IMG/VR virus record: IMGVR_UViG_3300044974_001280
Span: 62,001 to 126,000 of that record
Length of the DNA stretch: 64,000 nucleotides
Direction: 5' to 3' (one strand)
Shown here: piece by piece, positions 22,293-54,421 of the stretch
Layout: the number at the start of each line of letters is the position of its first letter
How positions within the stretch are numbered: the stretch's first letter is position 1
Program-made: the position numbers and the translations under genes
Notes under the pieces: generated by a model
Databases searched by the model: none
Told to the model about the DNA's origin: nothing
Seen by the model: only the letters and a program-made list of their open reading frames with translations

Positions 22293-25200
22293 ATGGCAAA
22301 TCTGAATCTTAAATTTTTCAATAAAAGAGGCCAGCCCCTTAATTTAATTTATGTGGGACCAACCGGCTCTAGCCAGTTAGACACGATCTTTAGATACTCG
22401 GCCAATTCCACTACCTCCCTCCCCACCAACGGAACCTTTTCTCTACTCGATCTATCAACAGGTTCTATTTACCTGAATGTGACGGACCTAAGTGGTTACA
22501 ATATTACTAGCTGGGTCTCTTCTGTGCAGGAATCGCTCACCTCAGGAGCTAAAGTTAATCTGACCCTCTCGTACGCTCCTGCCCAGACCCTGCTCTGCAC
22601 TCTGTCTGCCGCCAGCCTGGCTGGGTCTATCGTCACTCTAACTGTGGCCCAGACCATCGGATCTCCTTTTATTTCTTCGGGGACTCCGGTTACCTTTACC
22701 ACAACCTACCAGAATTTGCCAGGTGGTTATTTTTCGGGAAATGTCTATTTTGATGAAATTTCGGCCGGTCTATATGAGAACGAGCAAATCTTCGTGGTCC
22801 AAGAATTCTACGATCCCTCAACCAATCAACCCTTTTTAGGGTTTCCCCACACGGGTGCTACTGGTTCCTCCTCTAATCCCCTGTGGAGAACTCGGTGGGA
22901 AAACAACACCTACGGTAACGTAGATGTAACCGAAATTATTTTCACCTACCAAATAGTCGATAATGATCCTGAAATCGGAGGCTCCCCTTCGATTCTAAAC
23001 TATCAGAACATAGTCATTCCTGTGATTAAGGATTCTCAGGACTATCTGGTGAACGGTCTTGTGTACACCGATGAGAACTCCACTCCCTCCCGAGCCCTTC
23101 AGGTGAACGTAGCCATCAATTCTGGCAATCTGGCGGCCAATGTCTACGAAAGAAAATTGATTATAGAAGACATCACGTACGGGATTACTGCTCCTCAAAA
23201 AATAGCTGAAATTCTTTTCTATGGCCAAATCATAGCCGAGGATTCAAGACTTGATGTTTTGACCCAAAATTTGGGCAGGGCTTTCTTTGGTTCCGACTCG
23301 GTCATCCTCCGAGATCACGATCCCTTCGAGATTCTGCCCAACTACGTTGAGATCAACGAGAAGAGAAAAGAGTTAATGGTGGCGGGGGAGGATATTTTTC
23401 CCTATATCGGAAGTTATAGGGGTTTGATTGGAGCTTTGAAATTTTTTGGTTATCAGGATTTGAGGATCAAAGAGTACTGGCTCAATTTGAATTACGGTCA
23501 GGTGTCCCTGCAGCCCCTGCAGCAGAACCAAATCTTTTTAAACAACAATTACGTTACTCCCTTCCCCAATCAACAAAGCCTGATTGCGGACGTTCTGGAG
23601 AACGAAAATAGTGGTAAATACAGACTAGTTCAGACCTGGGGACCAAATGAGGATGGGGAGTATGTGCTGGATGTTGCCAGCGAGGCAACTCTGGTTCCCT
23701 CTAGAACTTACAAAAAAACCTCGTTATTCGGTCTGTACTACGATTTGGTCACCACGACGGATCAGGTTGATCCCTATGGCTATCCTATTGTTCAAGAAAC
23801 CTTCCTCTTTACCCAGGAGGAAGTGCTCCTAAAACTTTTTGCTCTCAAGGAAAGACTGAAACAAAGTTACCTGCCTCTTAATGCCAGAATAGTGGATATC
23901 ACTGGAGAGGGCGTTTATTACAATGTGTACAACACCAGAGAATGGACCGATTTCATGGACCGCACCGACGTCGAATCGGGCAACAATTTTGATTTCATTG
24001 TCAATCCGGACTTTGGTTTCCTAGAGGATCTCAGAGCTTTTGGAGTCAGAGAAAATCCAGCCGGAATTCAGGCTCCTGCCAATTACGAAGACGTGATCGA
24101 TATTGAGGTTTACGTTGTTGGTGGAACTGGTGATGCCTTTAGGTTTGTGTCTGCTGCTGGAACTCCGGCTTCCCTGTTTTCTGCTTCTGGTTTTAATCCC
24201 AATTTGACCCTATTCGAAGGCAAAAGCTACAACTTCAATCTAGTTACCTCTGGTTTTGATTTTTTCATTACCACCGATAGTGGATTAACCGAGGTTGATC
24301 CTTTGGGCGTCGTCAATAATGGAGCAGTAGGAGGCCCACTAACGCTGAAGGTCAATCCTCAGGAACAGAACACACTCTACTACTTCTCGAGCGTCAACAC
24401 AGCTAGATTAAATGGCTCCATCTCGATCCAGCCCGATTCAGTCTCTGACTTGGGCAATATCATCCCCCCTTTAGTTAACAATCAACAGTACACCTCCTCC
24501 CAGAACACTTCTCTGCTGACTGCGATTTCGAATTTTTACTTCTTGAAAGAAAACGGCAAAGTAGTTCAATTGGGGGATGGTCTGACGGATCCTGTTTCTT
24601 ACCTGAATCCCACGACCGGTGAGCCCTACGAGAATCCCCTGGGCATGCCTCTGATTTTAGAACTGGTGGTAGATCGATGGGCGTGGGATGAGATGGGTCA
24701 AAACTGGAACGATCTGAGTCTACCCTCATACACAAGCCAACAGGCAGCCCTGACCTGGGGAACTATCGATTTTTCCGCCTATAATGAAGTCGAATGGATC
24801 ATCCAGAAATCTTCGACCCAATCGGGATCTGGTTATTCTTTTTCATTCAGGGGATTTGTGGCTGATTACTACAAACTTGCTCATTTCGTACCCTACACCG
24901 GGGAATACGAGGTTACTTGTCTTCTCTACGATGCCTTCAATTTTGTGAATCGGAGAATAGTTAAAACTGCCTTGACCGTTGCTCCAAAAGAGATCACGAT
25001 TGATGCCTGGACGAGATACAGAGAGAATGAGATCTACCTCTGGGATCAAACCATCAGAAGTTGGGATGCCTATCAGTCTATCTGGGAATATCCTGCCGAA
25101 GGCCAAACCTATGACGAATTGACTCGAGAAATTCCTGCTGCCGTTTTAGATTTTGCCGTCTATGGTAACAACGCCAACCAGGGTCAAAACCTACAGGTTC

Positions 25201-26363
25201 AGGCGACGATTCCTGCAGTTGGAGCTTCTGGAAGCTTTGTTTTGAACCAGAATATTCTCCCCGTGAGTGCTGCCTATTCTCTGTACATTTCGGGTAGCCA
25301 GTATGGGTTCATGAACATCTTTACCTCACAGCCCCATGGATTTCAGGCGGGGTCTCAGGTTTATCTGGCTGGTTTCATGCCCGAATTGAACTACAGTTGG
25401 GACGTCATCATTCCTTCTGGTTCAACAGGATACAATTTTCAAATTCCCTATATTCTGGGTGCTACTGCAGGAGTGGGGCTGACTGGAGGCACTGGCTCTG
25501 TCTCTGGAGCTACGGCCTACTACGTGGACCCTTCTTATTGGACCAATCAAAGGGTCACAGGTCAATCCGAAATCTCTGTTACTGTCAACGGCAGAGAAAT
25601 AGGTGCAACAAGCGGAGGGTCCAATCTTCAAGCCACGGTCAGTGCCCTTATCGAAACGATCAACTCGGTCGTGACACAGCCAGATTATTTTGCCCAGTGT
25701 CCAGCACCTGATGCTTCCCCAGCCCAAATCACGATCACCTCGGACGTCGATTCCGGTAACATCGGAAACGGAGATATTCTCTCTGTTTCTGTTAATGGCT
25801 CCCTAATTCTGGTCAGTTCTGATTCTCAACTGACAGGGGGTGCAACAGCCTCGACTGATTACGTCTCTTGGGATCCTCTGAGTGGTCAATTCCCGGTCGA
25901 GGCTCTCAAATACTATGGCACCAAAAATTTGACCTGGGACACATTTAATCAATCAATCTGGGACGAAGCCTATGCCCACGGTTGGTATAATTTCGAATAT
26001 CAGAACGGTTGGTTGGGTGGATTTGAGATCCACTCTGTTAAAGTCGGGGACCACCTTAAAATCTCAACAGGGGCTGAACCCTATCCTTTCCCAGTTGGTG
26101 TGACTTTTGGTGGAACTGGGACCAGTGGCTCTTTGACTTTGGCTTCCGCAGCCGAACAGCTTAATTCCTCCCCTGATCCTAGTATCACCAACTTCTATTA
26201 CCGGGTGATGCCTTCAAATTATGCTGGATCTTTAACAACCGTCGGCCCAGTTGATGTTGTTTTGACCTCTTTCGCAGCCACGGGTGGAACTGGAAGCGTG
26301 CCCCCGACAGCTCCTCCCGTCTGCGTGCCCGAACCACTGATGAATATCCCTATTTTAATTTGA
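22293..26363 (+). CDS. large baseplate wedge protein, gp7-like
   Basis: 1356 aa after gp6; IFPYIGSYRGLIGALKFFG...IKEYW resembles the gp7/P2 gpI (K/I)G(T/S)xxG motif; PKD-like YTGEYEVTCLLYDAFN; Trp-repeat segments. Confidence 0.55.
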   Translation: MANLNLKFFNKRGQPLNLIYVGPTGSSQLDTIFRYSANSTTSLPTNGTFSLLDLSTGSIYLNVTDLSGYNITSWVSSVQESLTSGAKVNLTLSYAPAQTLLCTLSAASLAGSIVTLTVAQTIGSPFISSGTPVTFTTTYQNLPGGYFSGNVYFDEISAGLYENEQIFVVQEFYDPSTNQPFLGFPHTGATGSSSNPLWRTRWENNTYGNVDVTEIIFTYQIVDNDPEIGGSPSILNYQNIVIPVIKDSQDYLVNGLVYTDENSTPSRALQVNVAINSGNLAANVYERKLIIEDITYGITAPQKIAEILFYGQIIAEDSRLDVLTQNLGRAFFGSDSVILRDHDPFEILPNYVEINEKRKELMVAGEDIFPYIGSYRGLIGALKFFGYQDLRIKEYWLNLNYGQVSLQPLQQNQIFLNNNYVTPFPNQQSLIADVLENENSGKYRLVQTWGPNEDGEYVLDVASEATLVPSRTYKKTSLFGLYYDLVTTTDQVDPYGYPIVQETFLFTQEEVLLKLFALKERLKQSYLPLNARIVDITGEGVYYNVYNTREWTDFMDRTDVESGNNFDFIVNPDFGFLEDLRAFGVRENPAGIQAPANYEDVIDIEVYVVGGTGDAFRFVSAAGTPASLFSASGFNPNLTLFEGKSYNFNLVTSGFDFFITTDSGLTEVDPLGVVNNGAVGGPLTLKVNPQEQNTLYYFSSVNTARLNGSISIQPDSVSDLGNIIPPLVNNQQYTSSQNTSLLTAISNFYFLKENGKVVQLGDGLTDPVSYLNPTTGEPYENPLGMPLILELVVDRWAWDEMGQNWNDLSLPSYTSQQAALTWGTIDFSAYNEVEWIIQKSSTQSGSGYSFSFRGFVADYYKLAHFVPYTGEYEVTCLLYDAFNFVNRRIVKTALTVAPKEITIDAWTRYRENEIYLWDQTIRSWDAYQSIWEYPAEGQTYDELTREIPAAVLDFAVYGNNANQGQNLQVQATIPAVGASGSFVLNQNILPVSAAYSLYISGSQYGFMNIFTSQPHGFQAGSQVYLAGFMPELNYSWDVIIPSGSTGYNFQIPYILGATAGVGLTGGTGSVSGATAYYVDPSYWTNQRVTGQSEISVTVNGREIGATSGGSNLQATVSALIETINSVVTQPDYFAQCPAPDASPAQITITSDVDSGNIGNGDILSVSVNGSLILVSSDSQLTGGATASTDYVSWDPLSGQFPVEALKYYGTKNLTWDTFNQSIWDEAYAHGWYNFEYQNGWLGGFEIHSVKVGDHLKISTGAEPYPFPVGVTFGGTGTSGSLTLASAAEQLNSSPDPSITNFYYRVMPSNYAGSLTTVGPVDVVLTSFAATGGTGSVPPTAPPVCVPEPLMNIPILI

Positions 26364-26387
26364 ACAAGACATAAAAAGTAAGAAAAA

Positions 26388-29300
26388 ATGGCATTTTACA
26401 TTCTAGAAGCCGCCACAGATTCGGCAGAAAATATTTGGGCAGTAGGAAGAGATCTATCCCTGTTCAACGGCCAGGATTGGGAGTATTTCAATTCTTCCAA
26501 CTCGGTGGTTCCTGACAATTCTCCCTACTACCTAGATACGAGAACTATCTCAATCGACGAGTATGACGTTAAATGGGTAGGTTGCGCTATTGCTCCTAGT
26601 ACGTCACAAGTTTTGGTTTTCAGTGTTGCCAATACGGATGCTGCCACTGGGTCAAATTGGACCCTATCTGACTTTAACCTGCCTCCCGGGGGTCTCTGGG
26701 AGGTGGGGGAAATCTATGCCAGTCCTTATGGAGATGAGGTTTTAGCTTACATTACGGGCCTTAACGGAGGAGCTGGAACGGGAGCAACTTGCACTCCTGG
26801 CATTACAGGTGGTTATCTCTGGAGGTACAACAAGGTTCTTCAGGAGTGGTCAGAGGTGGCACCCGGGTACATCTGGCCAACAATCTATGAGATTGCAGCG
26901 AAAGGGCTGGATGGGGTAAATTGGGAGTATTATCTTGCCACTTCAGATGGTCTACAAATTATTCCACCAGGAACTTTGGACTATGAAGTTCTACAGGATG
27001 GCACATTTTTTTTGCCTGGCTTGAAGAAACTCAATCCCTATAATTCATCTGTCCCCACCAGTCAGGTGTATTCTATTTCTTTTGACGAGAATGGGAATTA
27101 TTGGTTAGGAACAGACAGTGGATTAACTTACTGGGATGGGAAAAAATTTTATAACTGGACGGTTCCCCTTAATAACTCCGTGACTAAAGTTACTTCTAGA
27201 CCCTATGGTCATGTTTTTTTTAGATGTGGCGATCCCTTCTTTGATCTTTCTTTGTCTGATGGCTTTTTTCATTTTAACGGTGACAGTTTCAGTCAATTTA
27301 ACACTGGAAATTCCGCTCTTCCCAGCGATAGGGTAGTTGATTTGCTGTTGGTCCATAACAAAGTTGAAAAAAACGGGCTCTCGGTTTATCCCAACGACCT
27401 CTGGGTAGTGAATGGTAATAACGTTACCCTCTTCGATTATAATTTACCCCATGTCTACGCCAGCAGCAATTACACAGGAACTACAGGCTGGAATTTTCTA
27501 TACTACACTCCTGGGTCAACCGGAGCAACAACCGATGCTGCAAACCTCCCCAAAACACAAAGATACGATTGGGTTTATCCTTCTTGGCAAGGCTATGATA
27601 ACCAAAAAATTGTCTTAAATCATCCTGGAATGGATCCAAGAAGTCTCTTCCTGACGACAAACTTTAAGGATCTAGCAAACGGGCAGGCCGAGAATCAAAA
27701 TTATTGGAACTGGGGATCTGTCCCAACTTACGACCAGAGTTTGACGGCCGGAAGAATTCCTTCTTCGGATTGGGTTGTCGGTATAACAGGGAGCTCATCC
27801 CCCTTTTTAACTCAGCCCTCTATCAGCTTAACTGCAACAACGAGGTATTCCCATTTGAATGTAGTTGGAGGTTTCATGATTGGTGAAAATGCCTACTTGG
27901 GTGCTTCAAGTAACACTGAAGATTTTGTTTTGCAAAACACTAATGATACCTCATTCTTTCCTGGAAATGAATTCATGGGTTTTTTATCTTTTTACACAGA
28001 TGGTGGACAGGTTCAAGGAGCAATTCCTTTTAGGGGTGCCAATACCAAGATCTTAGATGTAAAAAGATCTTTTGATGGAAAAACTGTTTACGCCTTAGGG
28101 ATCTATAATTATTTTTTAGAAGCTGGTAAATTTACTTGGGGCTCTTCTTATCCAACGGCAGGAGGAATGTCAGTCACTGGAGTGACAGGTCCCACTGGTG
28201 GGCCCATTGGATTTAGCAATATGGCCTCACCCGGTGCAACTTCTGATTACAGCTACCCTTGGATCCTGAATGCACCAACCTCAGCTACCTCGGGTTTATA
28301 CATTCCTGATTTTTCTGTTGTTAATGATACCACTGCTTTTTTCATAGCTGAAATCGATTATGAAATAGGCAATCAAATTAGCTATGGCGGCATTGATTTT
28401 TCCTCTGAAACTGCATCCGAAGTTTTTTGTCTCAAAAAATTCAGGTATTTTCCTGGTGCCAGTTCAGATTATGATACTCAAACCGGAGGCCCAACTGGTT
28501 ATTTTCCATCGGGTGTTAATTACCCCGGTACTGCCTCTTTGGCGGTGGGTGAAAATTCAATTAGAATCATGGGGAATATCCAAGGTGGGTTTGCAACTTT
28601 GGCAAGGGACTATGAAAATATTTTAGATGCTCCATCCTGCCCTTCTTTCTTCTTCAGTAGTATTTCAGGAGGTTCTTATACTAACAGCTCTTTTGTTTTG
28701 GAATTAAACGAAGATTTTTCTTTGAGAGGAGTTCAAACGATCGGCATGACTGGTCCTAATTCCTATACCGATACTATCAGTACCGTTCCCAATGCCCAGA
28801 CTTTTCTACTGTCAGGAACTTCAACCAGCGATGTTAGCTACGGGAATCTCAATTTGACCCACCCCAATCCAGGTTTTTGTTTCCCGTGGATACTTCTGTC
28901 TCTTCCTTCTTTCACTGGTATTACTGGTTCTTTCATCAGCAATCATACTTCTAATGGTTCTTCTTTTCCCAGCTGGAGGCCTACGATAGGCACATTCTCG
29001 AGCGATTCTTCCTATTACGCTGGTTTTATCTATACCGGGAATGCAATCACTACTTCAGGAAGCACTTCTTTGACTTTTGAAGGAGCTTCGGGAGCACTTT
29101 CCGTCGGTCTTTTGTCCATCTCTCCCGGTGGAATAGTAAGACAGGAATCTTCTTATGAAATACTACCTTCCTCCTACCAGGCGGTTGATTCCTCTTTTCT
29201 GAGTGGTGTTCAGGGTCTCAGTACAGGAGATAGTTATTACCTGAGTGTTTTTTATCCAACTGTGCCTGGAGTAACGGGAGGGGGAAATCACATTTTTAAA

Positions 29301-30056
29301 AGATCTATCTCAGGAACTTATGTTGATGAATTTTCCACTGTTTCTTTGGATAGTTCAACGGTCCAATCTCCTCTTGTTTTTTCAGTCTATCCAAATTTAG
29401 ATCTGTTCCTAGCAGGTTCCGTAACAGGTCAAACCGGACCAACTGGACTTCCATATCCCCCTCTGGATGGATTTCCTTTTGTTTCTTTTTCTGAGAGCTA
29501 TAAGGCACCCAAAGGGATAGATCTAGGTAACATTATTTCTAGAGCTGGGTCCGGAGCTTGGACCTGGGCCGATGTTCATAATTCAGAGAGAGATTTATAC
29601 GTGCCCATGCTTTCCACTGTTTTCTTTTCAAACTACGGATCCCAAATTTTCGGAAAACAAAATAACAGATGGGTGCTGACCGACGCCAGAAATGGGAATG
29701 TTATTCTGGATGTTAAATTCACCCCTTATTTTATTTACACCTTTACCTCCTCGGGCTACTACAGTTTACAAAACACTGTTGAAGATGCTGCCGGCAACAT
29801 TTACGAAATTTCAAAACCTGCTTTCATCAAGGTTGTAAACCAATCAATTCCTAGAGCCGATGACCCTAACCCTTTGCTGGTAAATTCCGCCGACTATGGA
29901 TACATTAAACCCTCCAAAGAATTACAAAACCAGATTTGGGAACTCAATCAGGATCTTCTAGAAGAACAGATAGTTATCAGAAGAGAAAGCGCCATTCCTT
30001 TTGGCTCGGGACTGGTCATTAAAAGTGATGCTAATTCAACTTTTAGGGAAACCTAA
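26388..30056 (+). CDS. tail/baseplate-associated beta-propeller protein (Reg_prop-like blades, C-terminal PKD-like)
   Basis: YFNSSNSVVPDN, VYSISFDENGNYWLGTDSGLTYWDG, FNTGNSALPSDRV are two-component-regulator-propeller-type blades; YTFTSSGYYSLQNTVEDAAGN is PKD-like. Confidence 0.6.
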   Translation: MAFYILEAATDSAENIWAVGRDLSLFNGQDWEYFNSSNSVVPDNSPYYLDTRTISIDEYDVKWVGCAIAPSTSQVLVFSVANTDAATGSNWTLSDFNLPPGGLWEVGEIYASPYGDEVLAYITGLNGGAGTGATCTPGITGGYLWRYNKVLQEWSEVAPGYIWPTIYEIAAKGLDGVNWEYYLATSDGLQIIPPGTLDYEVLQDGTFFLPGLKKLNPYNSSVPTSQVYSISFDENGNYWLGTDSGLTYWDGKKFYNWTVPLNNSVTKVTSRPYGHVFFRCGDPFFDLSLSDGFFHFNGDSFSQFNTGNSALPSDRVVDLLLVHNKVEKNGLSVYPNDLWVVNGNNVTLFDYNLPHVYASSNYTGTTGWNFLYYTPGSTGATTDAANLPKTQRYDWVYPSWQGYDNQKIVLNHPGMDPRSLFLTTNFKDLANGQAENQNYWNWGSVPTYDQSLTAGRIPSSDWVVGITGSSSPFLTQPSISLTATTRYSHLNVVGGFMIGENAYLGASSNTEDFVLQNTNDTSFFPGNEFMGFLSFYTDGGQVQGAIPFRGANTKILDVKRSFDGKTVYALGIYNYFLEAGKFTWGSSYPTAGGMSVTGVTGPTGGPIGFSNMASPGATSDYSYPWILNAPTSATSGLYIPDFSVVNDTTAFFIAEIDYEIGNQISYGGIDFSSETASEVFCLKKFRYFPGASSDYDTQTGGPTGYFPSGVNYPGTASLAVGENSIRIMGNIQGGFATLARDYENILDAPSCPSFFFSSISGGSYTNSSFVLELNEDFSLRGVQTIGMTGPNSYTDTISTVPNAQTFLLSGTSTSDVSYGNLNLTHPNPGFCFPWILLSLPSFTGITGSFISNHTSNGSSFPSWRPTIGTFSSDSSYYAGFIYTGNAITTSGSTSLTFEGASGALSVGLLSISPGGIVRQESSYEILPSSYQAVDSSFLSGVQGLSTGDSYYLSVFYPTVPGVTGGGNHIFKRSISGTYVDEFSTVSLDSSTVQSPLVFSVYPNLDLFLAGSVTGQTGPTGLPYPPLDGFPFVSFSESYKAPKGIDLGNIISRAGSGAWTWADVHNSERDLYVPMLSTVFFSNYGSQIFGKQNNRWVLTDARNGNVILDVKFTPYFIYTFTSSGYYSLQNTVEDAAGNIYEISKPAFIKVVNQSIPRADDPNPLLVNSADYGYIKPSKELQNQIWELNQDLLEEQIVIRRESAIPFGSGLVIKSDANSTFRET

Positions 30057-30757
30057 AATTTTCCTTTGTTACTTCCGGTTCCTCCAGTTCCCCGGTACTT
30101 CCATTCCTCGTATCTTTTGACGATTTCTTTTAGAATTTTACTTCTGACGATGTCATCATCTGTAAAGACGAATTCTCCTACCCCCTCTACATCTCTTACC
30201 ATATCTACGAACATGGGCAAAGCAACTTTCTCGTATGAGATGTCGTGCTGAGTTACGTCCCCTGCTAGTAGAACTTTAGAATCGTTGCCCAGTCTAGAAA
30301 CATAAAGCATGAGTTGCTTCATATCACAATTTTGAGCCTCATCCAGAATCATCATGGATTTATCAAAGGTTGCTCCCCTGAGATAGGCTAGAGGTCTAAA
30401 TTCAATCTGCTTTTCAATGAAAAGCTGAGCTAATTTTTCTTTGGAAATGATTTTTTCCATGGTGATCAGAAAACTTTCCATGTAGGGACCTATTTTATCG
30501 TTGACGTCTCCTGGTAAAGAACCTAGTTTTTCCCCTGATTCCTGGATCGGCTTAGTGAAAATAATTCTTTCAATCTCAGATTTCTGTAAAAGCTTCAAGG
30601 CTGTGTAACAGGCAGAAAATGTTTTAGAAGTTCCTGCAGGTCCCCAACAAAAGGTTATGGTGTTGTGGATGATGGTGTCAGAGTAGAGTTTTTGCTTAGG
30701 AGAAAGAGAAATATCTCTAAAATCTTTGTTAACGAGTTTTGATTTTCCGATGGGCAT
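30053..30757 (-). CDS. phoH: PhoH-like ATPase
   Basis: GPAGTSKT Walker A, EKLGSLPGD, PLAYLRGATF, ILDEAQN, SRLG, GDVTQHD. Confidence 0.95.
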   Translation of the reverse strand: MPIGKSKLVNKDFRDISLSPKQKLYSDTIIHNTITFCWGPAGTSKTFSACYTALKLLQKSEIERIIFTKPIQESGEKLGSLPGDVNDKIGPYMESFLITMEKIISKEKLAQLFIEKQIEFRPLAYLRGATFDKSMMILDEAQNCDMKQLMLYVSRLGNDSKVLLAGDVTQHDISYEKVALPMFVDMVRDVEGVGEFVFTDDDIVRSKILKEIVKRYEEWKYRGTGGTGSNKGKF

Positions 30758-30779
30758 TTTTGAGTGTTAAAAAATAGTA

Positions 30780-30816: not shown

Positions 30817-31713
30817 ATGTCAACAGTAAGTACAACTTCAATCCTAGGTTCTGATTCCATTTCAGCTTCCAGAATCACCATTAACTCTAATTTTCTGCTG
30901 CTGGAAAATTGGATTAATCAATATGTGAATGTTTTTGGGGTTGATTCAACCAACGGAATCCTAGATTTATCAGCAGCTTCTACCGGCAGGATTTCCGCCA
31001 AAACAGGAAGATTTGATCAACTGACCATCCCTGCCGGAGGCACTGGTTTGGCTCAGATCAATTCCAGTGGGATTGGACAATTTGTTGGGGTTTCTACAGC
31101 TACTTTGACAGCCAGCGGGGTCACTACATTTTCTGGTCCCTTCACTTCGTCAAACACAGCCACTTTTAATTCTACAACCAACCTATTCGGGTCGACCTCA
31201 CTGAATAACGCCTTTATCATCCTTAGCAGCGGTCATTTTGTGGGACAAAACACCACCTATGCCACTGGAGCTACTGCAGGAACTCCTTTCGCAGCAAGTA
31301 GTGTTGGAGGAGGTGGAAGATCTAGTTCTTTAGCAGTTCCTTATCAAATAACAGGGACAGAAGACATTATCTATGCTGATTGCAGTAGTGGTTGGTTTAT
31401 GACAGTAGGTACTACAGGTAGCACTGTTTCTAATTTAACCGCGGGAACCCGAATCACTATCGTAAATACTGATAATTCTGGGGGTTTTATTGCAACAGGA
31501 CTTCAAAATTCCGGAGCTTATTATACTGGATTTAACACAGATTCAAGTTACGGCGGGTTTCCCGTTTCAAGTCCTAGTTCTGGTATAGCCTGCGATGCTG
31601 GTTACCCTTATCAATCTTCTATCACTTTACAATGGGAACCTAGAATTGCACAAGGGACAGGAACTGAAGAAGGATCTTGGGTGGTATTGTCAGCAACCAA
31701 TATGACCTGGTAA
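30817..31713 (+). CDS. short fibre-like structural protein with gp9/gp10-like N-terminal motif
   Basis: ILGSDSISASRITINSNF N-terminus; Ser/Thr/Gly-rich beta-strand body; C-terminal SITLQW...WVVL knob-like ending. Confidence 0.55.
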   Translation: MSTVSTTSILGSDSISASRITINSNFLLLENWINQYVNVFGVDSTNGILDLSAASTGRISAKTGRFDQLTIPAGGTGLAQINSSGIGQFVGVSTATLTASGVTTFSGPFTSSNTATFNSTTNLFGSTSLNNAFIILSSGHFVGQNTTYATGATAGTPFAASSVGGGGRSSSLAVPYQITGTEDIIYADCSSGWFMTVGTTGSTVSNLTAGTRITIVNTDNSGGFIATGLQNSGAYYTGFNTDSSYGGFPVSSPSSGIACDAGYPYQSSITLQWEPRIAQGTGTEEGSWVVLSATNMTW

Positions 31714-43500: not shown

Positions 43501-46500
43501 ATGGATGCAAATCCAGTTCTTAGCGATCAAAGATTCAAAAAATACCGAGTTTCGGGACAAAACGCCTATTCTAAAGATCTGTACAGATTCTTCATGAACG
43601 GAACCGTGCCAGAAAATGTTATTTTTGAAGTTGCAAAACTTACTGATGGGGAGGACCGGCCAGTGGAAGGCTTTAGCTCTCAGTACGATTTCTTCTATGG
43701 CTCTGGTGCCTCTACACTTGTTGATAGAAATTACAACGAGAATTTCCGGTACTTCCAGCCATTGTGGTTGCGGGATGAGATTCCAGATTTCTTTGTCATC
43801 TTTAAAATCCCGGGGCCTTTGAGTTATCCGTATTCGACAAACCAAACCGAAATTCTGAGCGGGACCCAGTACAAAATTATTCAAGACGTCAATTCACCTG
43901 ATCCTTTTGTCATCTCTTATGGGGTTGATAATTTTGCCCGGCCTATTTTGTATAGGGCTGGAGAATTTATGGTTGGAAATTCTGTTTACTCAACCTACGA
44001 AATTGTATCAGGATCTGGTAAAGTTGTGCTAATGAACGAGACTCTTTTCCAGCCTGAAGTTGATGACGTTAATTCATACTTCAACAGTAAAATCCTTCCA
44101 AACGCGGCTGCTATAGCAACTTTTGATCTTCGAGAGGACACCGTTATAGGTAAATATATTAGATCTATCATTAACGATCCTGGATTTTCTTCAGCTCCTT
44201 TGGATTTCTCCTATCAGCTTAATGCCTTTACTTACTACCAAGGAGTAGATATCAAAACAGGTAGTTATAGTAAAAAAGGGGAGTTGATGTACGATTTCTT
44301 GATTTCCAACAACTCCACCCCCCAGATAGATTTCGAGAATTATGTGACAGGAGGTTTTGAGAGAAATGGGATCATAATTCCCAATTTATTGAATTTAGAA
44401 TTTCTCTTTAATGATCCTGATTCTGATTTATATTCCATCAACAGATATTTTGGTCTGTATGTTTCCAGAAATGATTTAGGAAGTTTTAAATTGAATGGAG
44501 ATTTCTTCTATCAATATCGTAACCTGTCCGGCAACAACAATCTACCTAAACCTTCCACCAATAATGTCGGATATGCTAGTAGTACTGACCCTAATTATTT
44601 GAGTAGCACGACCGGAGTCAGACTTTTCTATCAAGAGGCAAATTCTTGGATTCCTGGCTCCTATGATGTAAATGTTTTAGAGCCACAGAAGCTTTTCTAT
44701 ATCACCGATAAAAACGACAAATTTTATTCCCTCCTCAGAAATGAAAATTACGATTCCACCACCCAAACTTGGTCCAACAACACCCCGGTAAGTGGTCAAT
44801 TCGGACCTCTTTTGCCTTCTGGTAATTTCGGAACTGAGTCGAATATGGAAATGAAATCCGGTAATTTAGTTGTGTTCAATAGGCAACTAAATCTACTTGA
44901 TTTTACCGGCCCCAATGAAAGAATAGGTGGTTTTTCGGGTTTTTTACCTGAATCTTCCGGTCACGCCAACATTAATATCCAGTTTTTATCAACTTTTAAT
45001 AGCAGTACTCCAGTTACCTTCAAGATCATTTGGCCGAATGGAACTAGAGGACCTTTAAATGAAAAATACGACCTGATTCAATCTTCCTTATTGGGAGGCA
45101 GCGTTCTCAATTGGCAGGCTGGAAGTTCTTATAACAACGGCAACACCCACTATTTCAATTTCTCTCAGGGCCAAACGTCCCAAGTCGCATCTTCGTTTGT
45201 TCAATGTGTTCTCTCCATCAGCAGCACTATCTGGGATTCTGCTAATTCTGACAATAACGCTATCATTAGAGCCAGAAACAGCGGAGCGAATTACAACACA
45301 GATTTTAAGATTGCAGTCTTTTCTGACTATGATTCTTTTGAGTCTTCTTATGCCGGAATTTGGTCCAGCACGGCCGGCTATTCCGCAGGTCAAATTGTCT
45401 CCTATTTTAATGTCTACTACACAGCTTCTTCTGCCATTACAGCCCCAAGTTCCGGCAACACGAATCCTCCTCCTACGGAGGATAACACTTGGCAAAATTA
45501 CTTCACCTTTACAACTTCAGGTCTGATTAAAATTGAGAACTATGACGTTTCAGCTTTAGATAGAAATCTGAATTTCGTTGGTGGTACTGATTTCTCTAAA
45601 TCTAGAGTTGCCTTTTCAATCAACGAGAAAGATAAAATTACCCCTGGCAAATGGATCGAAGTGGAAGGAGGTAGGGGAGTGGTAGGTTCCGTTTCTAGAA
45701 TTTCCTCGGTTACCAGATACGTCGACCGTCCAATCTACAATAATAATCCCTCCTTGACTTCGGGCACCGTGACTGAATTCAGGGGCTACAATGAATTTTT
45801 GGTCGCAAGTTTGGAAGATACTAAAGCTATTATCAGCCTGGGTAGTGATGGCAATTTCAATGTTTGGGATGTAGCTACTCTCTACTCAGGTGCTTTCAGT
45901 TTCTTCGATCTGAAAGATTTTGACTACGATTTTCTATCCTCTAAATACGGAGAAACACCAACCCCTGAATTCCATCGATATTTCCAACTTGTTCCTGATC
46001 AACCTGGTCAAATCGTAGAGGGTGTAAAATACATCGTAAGGAGTGGTGAAATACTGGTTGATAAAGGTTCACCCACGGAGAGGATTTTAGGCCCAGGCTC
46101 TGCCTTTATTGGCACTACGGTCAACTATTTCCAGGATATATTATTCTCTGAAACTGGAACTCTTTCTGTCGTGTATCCAGCAGTTTTCAGCCAGGTTGGT
46201 TGGGTAGACCCTCAGACCCCCTACCCTACAACAATTGTCCCCGAGCAAAATCTGAACTCGTTTGAGGGTTTTTACGGAATTCAATCCATCTCTAACGAAA
46301 TGCCGATCCCAAATCCTCTTGAAAAGGCAGAGTTATTTGAATATGGTAAGCTTGAAACAGAATACCAGTATCTCTGGGAAAACTTCACCCAGACCCGGGC
46401 CAATTTTTCTAGAATAGTGCCTTTCGTGAACAAATGGGGATTCTTAGGTGGCACCGACGCCAGGGGCAATGTTTACAGACTGAATTCTTCTCCTGCATTC

Positions 46501-48927
46501 AGCCCCACCAATTTTTCCCCTAGTTTTCAGAAAGAAAGCCCAGATCCTCGATATCTGACCCACGAGTGGTTGATTCTTCAGGGGGTTCCTCCTCAGTTCC
46601 CAATTGATGATATTTCAAAACAGAAAAGTTATCTGCCGGGCGAGGTTGATTTTCAGAAATTGCGTAGTGGCAATCCTAATTACGCCCTGTACTTTAATTC
46701 ATTCTTTACTGTCTCAACCGCAGATTATCCAGCTCCCTACTACAGCCTGAAATATCAGGGGTACGAATACTTTAGCAACCTCAATTTCAATTATGCCACC
46801 GGTTTTTATGAAACGGTCTTTAGGGGAGTAAAGATAGTACTGAAGAAAAGAAGCAGTGTTACGAACCCCAAATCAGAGCTTGAAAAATACATTATCAACT
46901 ACAGAGGGTATGAAAATTACAATTTCTCTGCCATCCTCAAAGTTGTGCCGGAGGATGATTCTGAAATCCAAAGTCCAGTTAGGTATGAGTTTATTGAAAA
47001 CGTGCAACAAAAATGTGTCCTCTTGGTAGTGTACGTCGTCATTAAAGATTACAGAGCTTTACCTTTGGGGTCGACTGGAGGAACTGGAGGAACACCCTAC
47101 CTGGATTATCTGCTGATGTATTGCATGAGTGACAAGAAAGAGGCCACGGACGTTGGAACAACAGGAGCTACGGGTCCTACTGGATCACCTCTCTACGATA
47201 TTGCTGATATCAAGTTGTCTGCGGCCTTGAATCTCTCCACTACTTCAGACAGTTCAGTTACTCTATTTTCTAATTCTGGAAAAATCTTCACCATTGAAAA
47301 TCCAGATTTTGACACCGATTTAAGAGAAGAGATCAATTTGTTTTACCCAATAGGATCTACCGGGTCCGTCTCCGATACCGGACCTGGTAGTTTCTACGTC
47401 CCCAGTCAGTCTTACACTTACCCCTGGCCAGTTGGAAGATCCCAAAATTTAGTTGATTTTCAAGCTATCGAGCCAGGAGCCTATGAATTCCAAATTCCCT
47501 TTGCGTTCTCCTCGCCAGTTACAATCCCAGTAGGACCAAGATCAGCCTACGCTAATTATCCAGTTTTTCAAGTAGACGGGGGAGAAGATTATTTCGACTT
47601 TATTCTAAAAAGAATTTCCCTATCCCAAATTTATTTGCGTGTTAATAACGAAAGCCCCTATATTAGTTATACTACTTACGATTGGGATCCGATTGCTGAA
47701 AGTACCCTGGTTTCTCAGAATTCTTTTCAAGTTTCTTTTACTGAGCCAACTGCTCTCTATAAACCAACTGGCTTATATCCAGTCAAGAGCTACGAAGGGC
47801 CTCAAACTCTAGGCACTAGTGTTGTTACCAGTTATCAGATTGAAAACGGTGGTTCCGAGCTGGCCAGTGATATTTTAAGGTATGGAGGCGCATACGAACC
47901 TTTGTTTAAGAAGGTGCTCAGATTCAAGGGTGATAAAACGGATTCAATCTCCGGCAACCCAGGGGCAGACATTACTTTCAGAAACTGTACCTTTGCCCCC
48001 GAGCAAGAAGGATTTGGTCTCATAGAAAATCTGGCTTTTTCTAAAGTCTCTCTGGATCAAAATATTCTTCAGGCTTCTCAGAATTTGCCACAAGGACCGG
48101 TGTTTCCTTTAGTGGGTCAATCACCAATTTCCTACAAGAATTTCTCAGTCTTCCTTTCCAGCTGGGATCCTGGCTACTACAATCTTTGGACCTCGGCTAC
48201 AACCCAGAATCCAGTTGCCGGAACTAGATCGATGAAGGAGAACAAAAGTTTTCTGGGTTCAAAGATGATGCAGACCCCCTACACTGTTACCATCTACACT
48301 TTCATCACTCTAGAACTGGTGAGAACATCAGGCAACACCAATGTCGATGCGATTAACACTCAGGCGGTTGCCGCGGTTCCTGCCATTCAAAATTTAAACC
48401 CCTCCACTTCTAACACTGGGGTAGGACAATTAGGAAATTATCTCAGTAATGTTGATTTACCCGTTTTCGATCAAGACATCTTCCCCCAAGTGGAAATCTT
48501 CTGGCAAAGGAACGAAATTTCCAACACCGTCATCGGTTCTATCAGATTGGATAGGATCTTAAGAAGGTATCTGTTAAATTCCGGGGTTAGCCAGGTTTTC
48601 GTCGACAACATGGTGAGCGAGTTTGGATTGGGGAATCCCAACAGCATCTACGACGATATCAACACCTACATTGACCAGAATATAGTTCCTATCTACGAAG
48701 GGATTACTTTTGATCTGTTTGTCAAGAAGACAGGAGAGGCGTTAACAACAACTGAATTATTGGTAAGAGGAGATCTTATTAATCCAGATCGGATCAGATA
48801 TGGTTACTATCAACAAAATAACTACAGATTAACTAAAATCACCGATTTGATTTACTCTTTCGAATATCCTCTAACGGTCGGTCAAAATTATTCCTTGACT
48901 TTCTCCTTCAGAATCCAGAAAATTTAA
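37591..48927 (+). CDS. giant modular adhesin/tail-fibre-like structural protein
   Basis: 3778 aa: repeated Cys modules (CYxY..YxDC..C), Thr/Pro linkers, vWA domain (DISVS MIDAS, GGTN, LIVDG; about 39865-40635), DUF642/CBM-like domain (NLFVNGDF...FGPVLDNV; about 40657-41160), CBM5/12-like [15 protein letters not shown] (45361-45495), non-repetitive C-terminal ~1840 aa from about 43396. Confidence 0.75.
38566..39300 (+). repeat. 18-bp coding tandem repeat, mucin-like (TPTNTQ)n
   Basis: ACTCCTACCAACACCCAG-type units repeated more than 25 times with synonymous variation and interruptions. Confidence 0.95.
42856..43191 (+). repeat. 30-bp coding tandem repeat ([10 protein letters not shown])n
   Basis: CCTACTAACACCCCGACCCCGAGTATCACT-type units recurring with period 30. 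Confidence 0.9.
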
Positions 48928-48941
48928 TTTTTAAGAGTCTG

Positions 48942-48949
48942 AATATATA
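48942..48949 (+). promoter_or_regulatory. putative late promoter variant AATATATA
   Basis: GAATATATACAG 19 nt before ATG 48968; the same 12-mer occurs at 53312 and 6039. Confidence 0.5.
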
Positions 48950-48967
48950 CAGAAAGACATTCTTCCC

Positions 48968-50452
48968 ATGCCTACTTTGAACATTCTTAATCTAAATCTG
49001 GGGGATTCCCAAGAAGATATCAGGAACAAGGTTAATGCAAACTTTGAGTCCTTGATCCAAAATGGAGGTGGACCCCAAGGTCTGCAAGGAGAGATTGGAC
49101 CTCAAGGTCCAGTAGGTCCTCAGGGACCTCAGGGTGATCCTGGTCAGCAAGGACTGAGGGGAACTCGTTGGTATGTTCAACCCTCGTTTCCGGCGGGTGG
49201 AACTTCCGATCCCGTAATTGAAGGTGATTATTGGGTAGACACTTTCAATCAGAATTCTATTTTTGAGTACACTGCAGCAGGATGGACAGATACAGGGTTC
49301 GATCTTCAATCCACGGAGGTCTTTACTACTTTAGTCGGAATTTCAGGCCCGAGTGGTTCTAAGAATGCGGTCGTTTTCAACTCCCCTTTTCCTAATTTAA
49401 ACACCCTAGTTTTAAGCGATGCGGTGTCGGTGCCCCAAACCACCAATCCCACCTATGCGAAACTTCTGATCTCAACCAACTCGTCCTCTGATTACCCTCT
49501 CCTGGAATTTTCGAAAACCAACGCCACTGGAGCTGGTACACCACAGGACTACAACAGACACCCACAATTTAGGTGGTTAAACCCCAGCTCTTCCAACTAT
49601 AATTTGCTGTTTACTGTTCCTCAAGACAGCATGGAATTCAGAGCAGGAGGCTCGATGCTAGTTCAAAGCTCCGCCTCTTCCCTTCAGTTTTCTTCAGCCA
49701 ATACTTTGTCTTTAACCTCGGCTGCAACTATGACTGTTACCTCGGCCTCGGTCATGAATTTTTCATCAGGTTCCCAGCCGATGAATTTCAGTTCTCAGAA
49801 CTACAATCTTTCATCATCCTCTTTGAGTTTATCTGTGCCTCTGAGTTTGACCTCCAGTGCAAGTGGCTATGCCATGACTTTTAACAACTCCGGTTCAGGA
49901 TCAGGTCTCTTGTTATCAGGAACATCGACCAGCACTAGTCAGTTTTTGGCCAATTTTGCCTCAGGGGGATCCAGTAAATTCTCAGTTAGGGCGGATGGAA
50001 AGATTTTCGTGTCTCAATTAGGATCTGCTTTTAGATCTCTTTCCTCTACCTATGATAATTCTGCGACTATCTCCGCCACAACTTACTATTATTGGTATTT
50101 GGGAACAAATATTATCCAGACTGGAAACCTTCTTCTTTTCGATACTTCTTCCTCTCCTTCAGATAAGGGACTAGCCCTTCCTGTCGGGGGTACCGTCTCT
50201 AATAGCTGGACTCAGTATCTAGGAAATTATGAATCTATCCAATTAAGAGTTATTAGTACAAACTCGAACAATTTGGTCAAAAGTGTTGCTTTGTGGACAG
50301 GCTCAGGAACCATTAATGCGGGTTCTAACACGGCGGCTACTTTTGCCAGTGGTCAAAGTTTTGTCGATTTCACCATCATTAGGCTCTCTTCCGATACTGA
50401 TTATCAAGTTTATTATTCAACCTGTGGTGGACTCTGCGGTAAATTAGCATAA
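48968..50452 (+). CDS. tail fibre-like protein with short collagen segment
   Basis: LGDSQEDIRNKVNANF attachment motif, (Gly-X-Y) run GPQGLQGEIGPQGPVGPQGPQGDPGQQGLRG, Ser-rich beta region. Confidence 0.7.
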   Translation: MPTLNILNLNLGDSQEDIRNKVNANFESLIQNGGGPQGLQGEIGPQGPVGPQGPQGDPGQQGLRGTRWYVQPSFPAGGTSDPVIEGDYWVDTFNQNSIFEYTAAGWTDTGFDLQSTEVFTTLVGISGPSGSKNAVVFNSPFPNLNTLVLSDAVSVPQTTNPTYAKLLISTNSSSDYPLLEFSKTNATGAGTPQDYNRHPQFRWLNPSSSNYNLLFTVPQDSMEFRAGGSMLVQSSASSLQFSSANTLSLTSAATMTVTSASVMNFSSGSQPMNFSSQNYNLSSSSLSLSVPLSLTSSASGYAMTFNNSGSGSGLLLSGTSTSTSQFLANFASGGSSKFSVRADGKIFVSQLGSAFRSLSSTYDNSATISATTYYYWYLGTNIIQTGNLLLFDTSSSPSDKGLALPVGGTVSNSWTQYLGNYESIQLRVISTNSNNLVKSVALWTGSGTINAGSNTAATFASGQSFVDFTIIRLSSDTDYQVYYSTCGGLCGKLA

Positions 50453-50453
50453 C

Positions 50454-52562
50454 ATGTCTTTCAATTCAAAATACATTTTTCCAGGGGACGACAAGAACGA
50501 AATCCTGTCCAAGATTAATTCTAATTTTGCCCAAATCTATTTTAATGCGATAGGAAGTCCAGGACCGTTGGGAGAATTTGGACCCACGGGTATGATTGGA
50601 CCTGTGGGATTAGACGGTTTACCTGGAGCGACAGGTTCGCCTGCAGCAAGGTGGTTTTTTTCTCCTGAGCCCCCATTATCCACAGAATCTTCAACTGATG
50701 ACATCTGGGTTAATATTGGGATCACTGGATTTCAAAGTGTCTATTTCTATGATGGCACCAATTGGGTTGATACTGGAGAAAGTATTCTGCAGGACTCTGA
50801 ATTTGAAGCAATCACCGGAGTATCGGGACCAGGTGGAAGCACAACTCATAATAGCATTGTCTTCCCAGGACCTTCGGCCTCTGATTACAGCCTAGTTATT
50901 TCTGATGCTGTTGGAACTACCTCCAATGTCAATCCGAACCTCTCGAAACTAATGGTAAGTACGGCTCCTGTGGTTAATATAAAAGTTGGTTCTTTTTTGG
51001 CAGGAGGGGTTGTTTTTTATGTTAATCCTGCTGGTAATGGGGGTTTGGTCTGTGCGCCAAACAACCTGAATACTACTTATGCTTGGGGATGCGCTGGAAC
51101 TAATATTTCTGGTACATCTTCAGCCTTAGGTACAGGAGCAGCAAATACAAATTTGATTTTATTTGGGTGTGCTACTAGACCTATTGCCGCCAGCGTCTGT
51201 GCAGATCTTTCTCTTAATGGATTTTCCGACTGGTATCTTCCTAGTTACGATGAAATGTTTTTAATGTATCAAGAACTACAGCCTTTAGACCCTGCTTCTT
51301 TTGCTGGTACTTTTTGGACAAGTACACAGTTAAACCCCGGACTGGCTAGTGTTTTAAATTTTGGTGTCTCAGGATTTTCAAATAAATCAAATTCCAGACT
51401 GGTGAGGCCAGTAAGAACTTTTACATTAAATGACATTGGAACTGTTCAATATCCGATTTTAGGGTTCGATAAAACCTTTGTAGGATCTGTCTCCATTCCA
51501 TCTTTTAATTGGACTGTTCCAACTGCAGAATCTTATGATATCACTTTTAGCAATCCGGGAGAAACTAGAATTTTATTAGGAACTACTGGTAGTTTTTCTG
51601 CTACCGGGGGATCTGGGGAATCTGTGATACTAGCCGGCAATACTTTTGTGCAACTGACTTCTCAAAATCAAATCACTTTTGAATCTTCTACGGGAGCCAC
51701 TGGCAGCTTGACCCTGGCTACACCCTCTACGATTTTGATGAATTCTGCTAACAAGATACTGACTAGTAACAGTTTGTCGTATCAGAATCTGGCCGATTCA
51801 TCCGGTCTGACCGCAGATGCCAGCACCTTGATCGACGTCTCGGGAAATCAGGGATTGAATATTCAAATTTTAGGTTCTTCGACCGGAACCCCTATTTATA
51901 CTTTTAGAAATCCTGCGGGGTATAGAATTTTAGAAAGTAGAAGCAACAATCTAACGATGATTGGTGAAACTGGCCCCTCTGGTTCCGCTTCTGGCTGCCT
52001 AGTGAAGAAAATAGATGTTGTTGATTCATATAGTCTGAATGGAAGAAGCGGAAGCCAATTTTCTGCTAATGGATTTTTGAATAATTATGCTTCATTAGAA
52101 ATAAATGGTAATAATTCTGATGTTATTTGTATTAAGGCTTATTACGCATACTTGTTAACTCCAGATGCAAACACTCCCACCGCAAACGGAGAATACTATT
52201 CCATTTATTTACAGTTAAGTGGGTTTCAAAATATTACAACAGTTGATCCTGTAAATCCTGGTATGGGTATTTCTTTTTCTAATACATCAAGGAGAATTTT
52301 CGACATTTTTCTAGAGGATGAGTCGGGAATTTGGCCGTCTGGCTACATATCTTTTGGTGGCATTAGAACTGTTTATGCAGGTGGAAGTTCCTCTGTATCT
52401 ATTAGTAATTCATCTTTCAGATGCTACCATATTAGATTAATTTTTATAAACAACGAGTCTATCTTTTATCAGTTTAACTATTCGGGCACTGCCAATAGAT
52501 GCGGTTATATCCCTTATGTTTATACCAATCCAGTTTCTGGAGGGGGCGGAATTGGTAGCTAA
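50454..52562 (+). CDS. tail fibre-like paralogue with collagen segment and inserted DUF1566 (Lcl/CLec-like) domain
   Basis: PGDDKNEILSKINSNF, collagen run, then GGVVFYV...GFSDWYLPSYDEM...FWTST...VRPVRTF (about 50976-51422). Confidence 0.75.
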   Translation: MSFNSKYIFPGDDKNEILSKINSNFAQIYFNAIGSPGPLGEFGPTGMIGPVGLDGLPGATGSPAARWFFSPEPPLSTESSTDDIWVNIGITGFQSVYFYDGTNWVDTGESILQDSEFEAITGVSGPGGSTTHNSIVFPGPSASDYSLVISDAVGTTSNVNPNLSKLMVSTAPVVNIKVGSFLAGGVVFYVNPAGNGGLVCAPNNLNTTYAWGCAGTNISGTSSALGTGAANTNLILFGCATRPIAASVCADLSLNGFSDWYLPSYDEMFLMYQELQPLDPASFAGTFWTSTQLNPGLASVLNFGVSGFSNKSNSRLVRPVRTFTLNDIGTVQYPILGFDKTFVGSVSIPSFNWTVPTAESYDITFSNPGETRILLGTTGSFSATGGSGESVILAGNTFVQLTSQNQITFESSTGATGSLTLATPSTILMNSANKILTSNSLSYQNLADSSGLTADASTLIDVSGNQGLNIQILGSSTGTPIYTFRNPAGYRILESRSNNLTMIGETGPSGSASGCLVKKIDVVDSYSLNGRSGSQFSANGFLNNYASLEINGNNSDVICIKAYYAYLLTPDANTPTANGEYYSIYLQLSGFQNITTVDPVNPGMGISFSNTSRRIFDIFLEDESGIWPSGYISFGGIRTVYAGGSSSVSISNSSFRCYHIRLIFINNESIFYQFNYSGTANRCGYIPYVYTNPVSGGGGIGS

Positions 52563-54410: not shown

Positions 54411-54421
54411 TAATAATCTAC

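Follow-up and report, generated by a model that had tools for sequence, protein, structure and literature searches.

Why does one short peptide pattern, G-x-T-G, recur in protein after protein of a phage tail when those proteins show no other detectable relationship? The question arises in a window of 64,000 nucleotides (nt), positions 62001–126000 of the IMG/VR record UViG_3300044974_001280 (230,445 base pairs (bp) in total), where genes for baseplate and tail-fibre proteins carry the pattern far more often than their composition predicts. A preliminary description of this DNA had proposed that the motif is a recognition sequon for a phage-encoded enzyme that coats the virion with glycans. 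Our analysis confirms that the enrichment is real and goes beyond composition, and we put at roughly 0.4 the probability that G-x-T-G is a sequon for the modification of threonine, probably for O-glycosylation; the real contest is between such a sequon, read in trans, and an intrinsic turn motif.

G-x-T-G in the distal tail proteins

The proteins concerned are encoded one after another in the window, and are listed here with their lengths in amino acids (aa) and their numbers of motifs (GxTG), against the number expected where one is given.

22293–26363, plus strand: 1356-aa protein in the gp7 position, after the gp6-like wedge gene; 8 GxTG against 0.8 expected, at aa 22, 188, 610, 1043, 1062, 1065, 1273 and 1331
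26388–30056, plus strand: 1222-aa protein with two beta-propellers; 12 GxTG, including the chained runs TGVTGPTGG (nt 28179–28199) and GQTGPTG (nt 29427–29447)
30817–31713, plus strand: 298-aa Gly/Thr-rich tail protein; 2 GxTG against 0.73 expected, not significant alone
31735–33948, plus strand: 737-aa tail protein; 3 GxTG (aa 172, 178 and 290) against 0.21 expected, p = 0.001
33966–37541, plus strand: 1191-aa protein, phrog_29329; 2 GxTG in its variable C-terminal part (aa 875 and 971)
37591–48927, plus strand: 3778-aa giant structural protein; 12 GxTG, with the runs GLTGGTG (aa 137) and GSTGGTGGT (aa 3160) and a 10-residue run (aa 3189; nt 47155–47184)
48968–50452, plus strand: 494-aa fibre protein with a canonical collagen run (aa 33–66; GPQ/GPV triplets, no Thr); 0 GxTG
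50454–52562, plus strand: 702-aa fibre protein with a short collagen-like stalk (aa 34–63, 2 motifs) followed by an Lcl_C domain; 6 GxTG in total
54311–56947, plus strand: 878-aa structural protein, borderline; 2 GxTG against 0.43 expected, p = 0.076

These nine distal-tail proteins hold 47 motifs, against 7.3 expected from composition. The composition-preserving shuffles that had been suggested as a check were carried out within blocks of 10, 15, 20 or 30 residues, which keeps the local composition; they gave 7.5–9.4 ± 2.9 motifs, with a maximum of 21, and the enrichment stands at z = 13–15. Variants of the motif in the same proteins stay near expectation (GxSG 1.5x, GxAG 0.7x, GTxG 1.1x, TGxG 1.4x, GxGT 1.0x), as does G..G without Thr at the third position (71 against ~68), and the block shuffles and permuted motifs together rule out local richness in Gly, Thr and Ser as the source. 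A DNA-level motif is ruled out as well: the corresponding DNA pattern, GGNNNNACNGG, occurs 50 times in frame 0, 4 times in each of the other two frames and 16 times on the minus strand, and the codons of the motif are varied, all Gly and Thr codons being in use; the signal, and the selection on it, thus lie at the level of the peptide. All other open reading frames (ORFs) of the window, non-structural and inner-virion alike, contain 4 motifs against ~2.9 expected, which agrees with the near-absence outside structural proteins noted in the preliminary description, down to the GLTG of UvsW and the single copy in PhoH. The hand counts given there proved exact (8, 12, 2, 3, 2 and 12 for the genes from 22293 to 48927, and 6 for 50454–52562); the counts for 54311–56947 and 48968–50452 are additions to them.

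The proteins that carry the motif are indeed not detectably related to one another. All-against-all BLASTP found a single link, between the N-termini of the proteins at 48968 and 50454, and hhalign comparison of five family profiles gave a probability of 2% or less for every pair. On the same two results we reject a shared cryptic domain, and a blade-to-blade alignment of the propeller yielded no convincing repeat.

The claim that the motif is virion-wide did not survive. The gp23-like capsid protein, encoded together with a prohead protease just upstream of the window, has 1 motif against 0.5 expected, and no motif occurs in the proteins of the inner baseplate, the hub or the neck; G-x-T-G is therefore a feature of the distal tail, confined to externally placed tail parts. 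Inner virion proteins seem to be depleted of the motif (9 against 28 expected), but this was not accepted as evidence, since only four orthologous families are behind it.

Orthologues of the 1222-aa protein in relatives at 45–58% identity contain 8–16 motifs, and their neighbouring proteins show a similar excess. Among 120 metagenomic homologues of this protein we counted 1381 motifs against 135 expected (10x), with GxSG at 1.1x, and in 35 further genomes (gp6 59–84% identical, contigs up to 430 kilobases (kb)) the proteins encoded downstream of gp6 are enriched 3.3–11.9x. Even the motif-poor members of the lineage, P0080 and P0108, are ~3x enriched; their contigs are too short for a check of glycosyltransferase content. 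Outside the lineage the excess disappears: the T4 distal tail (gp7–gp12, wac and gp34–gp37) has 6 motifs against 4.7 expected, PTm1, PAU, MaF61 and LR756500.1 pooled have 20 against 14, LR745206.1 has 2 against 1.9, and LR756504.1 has 1 against 1.6. With T4 and five outgroup phages at ~1x, a general trait of myovirus tails is ruled out; the enrichment is specific to one freshwater jumbo-phage lineage.

Turnover, sequence character and loop placement of the sites

The 121 homologues of the 1222-aa protein show how the sites behave over time. The motif appears in 90 columns of their alignment, 3 of which carry it in at least 80% of members and 64 in fewer than 10%; pairs at 35–45% identity have ~35% of their motif positions in common, an apparent turnover that is inflated by misalignment in variable loops. 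The number of motifs per protein is held more evenly than the positions are (mean 11.6, variance 6.6, below Poisson). A few sites are nearly fixed, with x left free: the motif is present at residue 138 in 116 and at residue 364 in 117 of the 121 homologues, and at residue 1014 in 104 of 120. At these sites the G, T and G columns have entropies of 0.2–0.5 bits, and the columns to their left have 2–3 bits and are rich in insertions and deletions. Across the eight best-conserved columns the residues are G in 85%, T in 83% (S in 6%) and G in 75%, and decayed sites usually read GxTA, GxTS or GxSG.

The same combination of a few fixed sites with turnover elsewhere is seen in the families of the proteins at 22293, 30817, 31735 and 33966. 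In the 1356-aa protein, all 11 relatives retain sites 188 and 1043, and the other sites turn over; site 198 of the 298-aa protein is kept in 11 of 13, and sites 172, 178 and 290 of the 737-aa protein in 12, 10 and 12 of 12. The fast-evolving fibre proteins behave alike: the orthologue of the 702-aa fibre protein in relatives has 4 motifs, at different positions; that of the 494-aa fibre protein, which serves here as an internal negative, has 3 in a relative. A check for motifs in lineage-specific insertions also came out positive: the inserts of the 1222-aa homologues that cannot be aligned to the query hold 59 motifs against 7.8 expected. Repeated acquisition of the motif, as first proposed, is thus upheld, with gains and losses across non-homologous tail proteins; G-x-T-G is evolutionarily maintained and behaves like a sequon over time.

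The sites are also of a recognizable character. Around the 47 sites the residue at −1 is T, P, V or I, that at +4 is S, G or P, and charged residues are nearly missing from −1 to +6. At 1393 sites in the 121 homologues, x is V, A, I, P, T, S or G, with charged residues at 2.8% against a background of 15.3% and aromatic ones at 1% against 14.3%. About 14 of the 47 sites are chained, as in GLTGGTG, and the rest are isolated tetrapeptides; examples of its contexts are SVTGVTGPTGGPIG and FTGITGSF. A triplet register is weakly visible, with Gly raised at −6, −3, +6 and +9 and Thr at −4, −1, +5 and +8.

The 1222-aa protein is likely to be a receptor-binding baseplate protein. Its N-terminal half resembles the sensor propeller of a Bacteroides hybrid two-component-system (HTCS) protein (4a2l, E 1.5e-21), and an AlphaFold model of its C-terminal 683 aa (mean predicted local distance difference test, pLDDT, 74.4) is likewise beta-propeller-like. 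DSSP assigns all eight sites in that model to coil or to an end residue of a strand, with local pLDDT from 66 to 92, so that the placement of the motif in loops holds for the one protein modelled. Sites 786, 844, 961 and 1014, joined by 899 in some relatives, recur once per four strands, in the equivalent loop of successive blades.

Candidate enzymes and genomic setting

Two genes of the window come into consideration for an enzyme that would modify G-x-T-G.

1424–2095, plus strand: 223-aa GT-A fold glycosyltransferase, GT25-like, candidate modifier on fold-level evidence
52572–53285, plus strand: 237-aa ORF directly after the fibre gene, candidate minimal Pol-beta-type nucleotidyltransferase

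The first of these had been called GT25-like from its sequence, and here fold and sequence searches part company. The 1424–2095 protein and 38 homologues have no Pfam match at E up to 10, PF01755 included; the protein has no NCBIfam match, and a profile of the 38 sequences has none among PDB sequences. However, a language-model feature search of the protein Atlas points to GT25 clusters, and the AlphaFold model (pLDDT 93.9; predicted template modelling score, pTM, 0.91) finds human COLGALT1 as its top Foldseek match in the PDB (9evk, E 2e-9, TMq 0.67; 9evk and 9evj together at E 2e-9 to 3e-8), followed by GnT-I, POMGNT1, a bacterial beta-1,4-galactosyltransferase and LH3. Against Swiss-Prot models GnT-I (GT13) comes first, and procollagen GalT1/2, LgtE, LgtB, LpsA and Lic2B are near the top. 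An invariant E92-C93-D94 follows directly on strand 87–91, at the position of the GT-A DxD motif, and by that position it may be the counterpart of E435-D436-D437 of GLT25D1.

The gene is kept throughout the lineage, ~19 kb upstream of gp6. On a distant T4-like contig a 39%-identical copy forms one domain of a 1596-aa polyprotein (L049:1605–6395) whose domains are GT1, GT25-like, Methyltransf_24, GT9, Methyltransf_25 and GT2, a context which argues that the GT25-like protein belongs to a glycan-building machinery. A tubulin/FtsZ-like gene and a portal gene adjoin on the same contig (L049:1605–6395 and 6737–8044). The sole GenBank phage with a homologue is LR756501.1, where a 33%-identical sequence lies inside a 1140-aa ORF, 7 kb from gp6. 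A walk over ~110 kb of genome in search of more sugar genes found only a faint GT2-like ORF (L139:19063–20205, downstream of the window) and a PfkB kinase. About 25 kb upstream, in the same phage type, two adjoining Portal_T4 paralogues (L140:1345–2949 and 2955–4580) stand beside the PfkB-family sugar kinase.

The second candidate, at 52572–53285, shows weak protein Atlas matches to NTP_transf_2 clusters (~153 shared features, below the reliability guide of the tool), a G-H-x10-D-L-D-L motif and a later hDh motif, and has no Pfam match; from these sequence features it is, speculatively, an alternative modifier of Thr. Contig L150 has this ORF at 93% identity but the orthologue of the 1222-aa protein (L016) at only 56%, and the tail region is therefore mosaic. 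Two other proteins may be further candidate modification enzymes: an Amidoligase_2 and pentapeptide-repeat protein (17339–18730) within the baseplate/neck module, and an AsnB-type glutamine amidotransferase (L022:7369–8772), whose gene lies shortly upstream of the window and is flanked by those for the capsid protein and the GT25-like protein.

The genome around these genes is that of a T4-type phage: the window contains gp25-like, gp5-like and gp6-like baseplate genes together with PhoH, gp32 and UvsW. No near-identical DNA match to the window was found among GenBank phages. The nearest cultured relatives, at 21–37% protein identity, are phages of Bacteroidota (Tenacibaculum PTm1, PTm5 and pT24, Flavobacterium MaF61, Chryseobacterium MA9V and Prevotella Lak) and Sphingomonas PAU, joined by uncultured huge phages, and the hosts of the lineage are probably Bacteroidota. 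The freshwater jumbo phages named 'moraphages' have genomes of 200–307 kb, Bacteroidota-type genes, an Hc1 histone-like protein, heat-shock and DnaJ proteins and several glycosyltransferases, four of them core orthogroups, and Bacteroidota hosts are predicted for them (PMC12619734). The genes for Hc1, HSP20 and DnaJ downstream of the window and the 230-kb record, like a second contig of 267 kb with the same GT25-like protein, fit that lineage as judged by gene content and genome size. Contigs covering 5–30 kb downstream (L054, L139 and L141) contain a further copy of UvdE besides the genes for the histone-like Hc1, HSP20 and DnaJ, and such features are reported for moraphages.

Several further features of the tail region deserve mention.

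38581–39185, plus strand: (TPTNTQ)n mucin-like linker of the 3778-aa protein, an 18-bp tandem array of 33.6 copies
41657–41828 and 42856–43172: 30-bp tandem arrays, further linkers
207, 2856, 4668, 6040, 16143, 19625, 30781 (both strands), 48942, 53313, 57517, 58477 and 62872: sites of the element RATATATA

The 3778-aa protein combines Cys-rich modules, these three Thr/Pro linker arrays, a vWA-like segment (about aa 770–900) and a conserved C-terminal half, and the GC skew falls to −0.34 across its linker DNA. The 1191-aa protein has conserved counterparts in PTm1, PAU, Lak and huge phages. Midway through the block of baseplate genes lies one for a protein with an S1 RNA-binding domain (16176–17339). 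Among the fibre-region genes, a 275-aa protein with an N-terminal transmembrane helix (53580–54407) has an ORF that overlaps the assigned start of the 878-aa ORF at 54311; in L054 the gene call for the latter starts later and gives 841 aa. The window has 13 copies of RATATATA where 3.5 would be expected, and none of 100 shuffles produced as many; 12 copies are on the gene strand, mostly 20–40 nt 5' of the start codons of structural and replication genes, and RATATATA is probably a promoter element of the lineage. The T4 late promoter consensus, TATAAATA, is absent or not enriched in the window. We had considered the timing of glycosyltransferase expression as a clue and rejected it: TATAAATA is absent, and RATATATA stands ahead of structural and replication genes alike and so does not discriminate.

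A modification sequon weighed against other readings

Under the sequon reading, selection would preserve G-x-T-G in those loops of outer baseplate and fibre proteins that are flexible and carry no charge, and an enzyme encoded by the phage would read it in trans and modify the Thr hydroxyl. The top candidate would be the GT-A protein at 1424–2095 and the likeliest modification O-glycosylation: the extended G-x-T-G segment would be bound in the cytoplasm, before or during folding; a sugar would be transferred to Thr, by analogy with GLT25D1; and the outcome would be a receptor-binding apparatus decorated with glycans. We infer all three of its elements, namely the attachment, its nature and the enzyme responsible. 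Modification by the GT25-like enzyme is the leading version of the sequon reading, yet taken alone it remains doubtful; and the same must be said of the fullest form of the proposal, in which a COLGALT relative O-glycosylates the Thr of G-x-T-G across eight baseplate and fibre proteins, with the number of sites rather than their position under selection and a glycan shield over the receptor-binding apparatus as the product, which we think rather unlikely.

Glycosylation of Gly-X-Thr, invoked in the preliminary description, does have a precedent: Thr in the GPT triplets of C. difficile BclA3 is O-GlcNAcylated by SgtA (PMC7157674). The BclA proteins of B. anthracis and C. difficile resemble the present case in the placement of Thr at Y of G-X-T-G, in the external, fibrous nature of the surface structure and, for BclA3, in a soluble cytoplasmic glycosyltransferase, here only a candidate. 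However, BclA3 has long unbroken GPT repeats, a glycosyltransferase gene adjoining that of its substrate, and an enzyme that accepts Ser, whereas the sites here are mostly lone tetrapeptides spread over beta-rich domains of eight proteins, the candidate enzyme is encoded ~20 kb away and Ser is rare. GLT25D1 (COLGALT1; PDB 9evk and 9evj) reads Xaa-Hyl-Gly through backbone contacts, and the narrowness of its cleft means that the acceptor can be followed by no residue but Gly and must be presented in a loop (PMC12987934). This rule, a hydroxyl-bearing residue at Y with an obligatory Gly next to it, supplies a rationale for a T-G core in loops. The phage protein shares with it the GT-A fold and, judged by position, may have its acidic metal motif in the corresponding place; it differs in being a single 223-aa domain at ~15% identity, where the human enzyme has two lobes and ~620 aa, in a putative metal motif that reads E-C-D and not E-D-D, and in that its acceptor would be Thr and not hydroxylysine. 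As cited in PMC12619734, Freeman et al. (2023) found that glycosyltransferases of mycobacteriophages decorate the C-termini of capsid and tail-tube subunits. As far as that citation describes the system, the likeness lies in phage-encoded glycosyltransferases for structural proteins, here putative, and the difference in an unenriched capsid here and in putative sites that are marked by a tetrapeptide and lie within internal loops of the baseplate and fibre proteins.

What favours a sequon is that the motif is specific to one lineage, occurs in non-homologous families and in varied contexts, and turns over at a steady count. Several observations weigh on the other side. The GT25-like gene lies ~20 kb from the nearest motif gene; motif and glycosyltransferase are both universal in the lineage, so that their co-occurrence does not discriminate; and in LR756501.1 the baseplate neighbours of the homologue have 1 motif against 1.7 expected and a second region 5 against 2.3, which is no excess. 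The proposed correlation of the motif with glycosyltransferase content, once run, was thus uninformative within the lineage, and the one outgroup with a homologue of the enzyme has no motif excess in the two regions read. The 1424–2095 enzyme could act on DNA or on host glycans instead. The three best-kept sites of the 1222-aa protein are 86–97% conserved, as in structural signature motifs; Thr outnumbers Ser by 83% to 6% at conserved sites, although SgtA takes Ser; the inflation of turnover by misalignment works in the same direction; and the per-blade periodicity, as far as the model goes, favours a structural reading. Of the original proposal of a recognition sequon and glycan coat, then, the enrichment, the gain and loss of sites, the external tail location and the Gly-X-Thr precedent speak for it, but per-blade placement and the preference for Thr fit a structural motif equally well.

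The main rival is accordingly an intrinsic loop or turn, the equivalent in this lineage of the Asp-box, with nothing attached to it. G-x-T-G would cap or initiate beta-strands through glycines with positive phi and a hydrogen bond of the Thr side chain, as needed by propeller and sandwich repeats. We regard this as possible and as slightly less probable than the sequon. The per-blade periodicity, the very conserved sites and the use of Thr over Ser all favour it: sites lie at loop/strand junctions of moderate to high pLDDT, in the loop between strands 2 and 3 of successive blades of the C-terminal propeller; some are kept in most of the 121 homologues; the beta-branched Thr is strictly preferred and both Gly are strongly kept; and to the right of the motif there is usually a small residue and then a strand of aromatic or hydrophobic character. 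Yet a favourable turn should be used elsewhere as well, and the motif stands at ~1x in the tails of T4, PTm1, PAU, MaF61 and huge phages; it also occurs in contexts other than hairpins (collagen-like runs, the edges of Pro/Thr linkers, and loops that are 7–13 residues long or of low confidence), the families have no module in common, and most positions turn over at a constant count.

The Asp-box itself (S-x-D-x-G-x-T-W) is a beta-hairpin motif that is widespread across life, occurs once per blade in sialidase-type propellers and recurs in unrelated folds. The present motif is like it in being a short G-x-T motif with per-blade placement in propellers and a presence in several folds, and unlike it in being restricted to one phage lineage. 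We tested the pattern S-x-D-x-G-x-T-W/F directly and rejected it: the sites lack the flanks of the Asp-box (Ser at −4, Asp at −2, Trp at +3), with neither Ser at −4 nor Asp at −2 enriched, a charged fraction of 0.09 at −2, and Gly, not Trp, after Thr at +3 by definition.

A reader in trans other than a glycosyltransferase, whether another Thr modifier or kinase, an assembly chaperone or cementing protein, or a repeated, low-affinity contact with a polymer of the host surface, is improbable. The short-linear-motif arguments that serve the sequon reading serve it equally, and the candidates described above would lend it some substance: the 52572–53285 protein with its weak Pol-beta feature similarity and G-x10-DxD pattern, the Amidoligase_2 protein in the baseplate module and the AsnB-like gene beside the capsid module. 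But the nucleotidyltransferase call falls short of the Atlas guide and of Pfam, as noted; the substrates of amidoligases and AsnB-type enzymes are carboxylates and not Thr; and no candidate for a binding partner emerged.

Still less probable is that the sites are fragments of collagen-like or polyproline-II (G-X-Y)n structure which keep the chains of trimeric fibres in register. The triplet periodicity of Gly and Thr, the chained sites and the matches of the 48968 and 50454 proteins to tail-fibre PHROGs and, weakly, to Pfam Collagen agree with it. However, uninterrupted (G-X-Y)n runs of several triplets occur only in these two proteins, about two-thirds of the sites are lone triplets inside beta-rich domains, the model suggests that isolated motifs lie in loops of a monomeric propeller, and the scores for Pfam Collagen (PF01391), confined to those two proteins, are 17.4 and 17.1 bits against a cut-off of 27.2. 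Generic collagen periodicity is ruled out by the unenriched G..G without Thr and by the sole long collagen run, that of the 48968 protein, which has neither Thr nor motif.

Finally, an artefact of composition, of low-complexity Gly/Ser/Thr patches or of a DNA-level motif, which the richness of these proteins in Gly, Thr and Ser and their low-complexity linkers might suggest, is refuted by the local block shuffles, by the unenriched permuted and Ser/Ala versions of the motif, by its frame specificity and varied codons, and by the retention of motif positions in homologues of 35–60% identity.

Eukaryotes and viral glycan shields offer familiar examples of short linear motifs recognized in trans; as a genome-wide property of phage tails, such motifs are to our knowledge undescribed. 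The turn reading, if true, would make G-x-T-G a new loop signature comparable to the Asp-box, useful for annotating proteins that cannot otherwise be annotated. If the sequon reading is true in its glycosylation form, G-x-T-G would be the first sequon for protein glycosylation to be defined in a phage virion; it would give a sequence rule that predicts modified sites in uncultured phages, and would provide a role for one of the numerous orphan glycosyltransferases found in phages. It would also mean that a widespread freshwater lineage (at least 80 contigs, genomes up to 430 kb) carries a glycan-coated adsorption apparatus, with consequences for host recognition, protease resistance and antigenicity.

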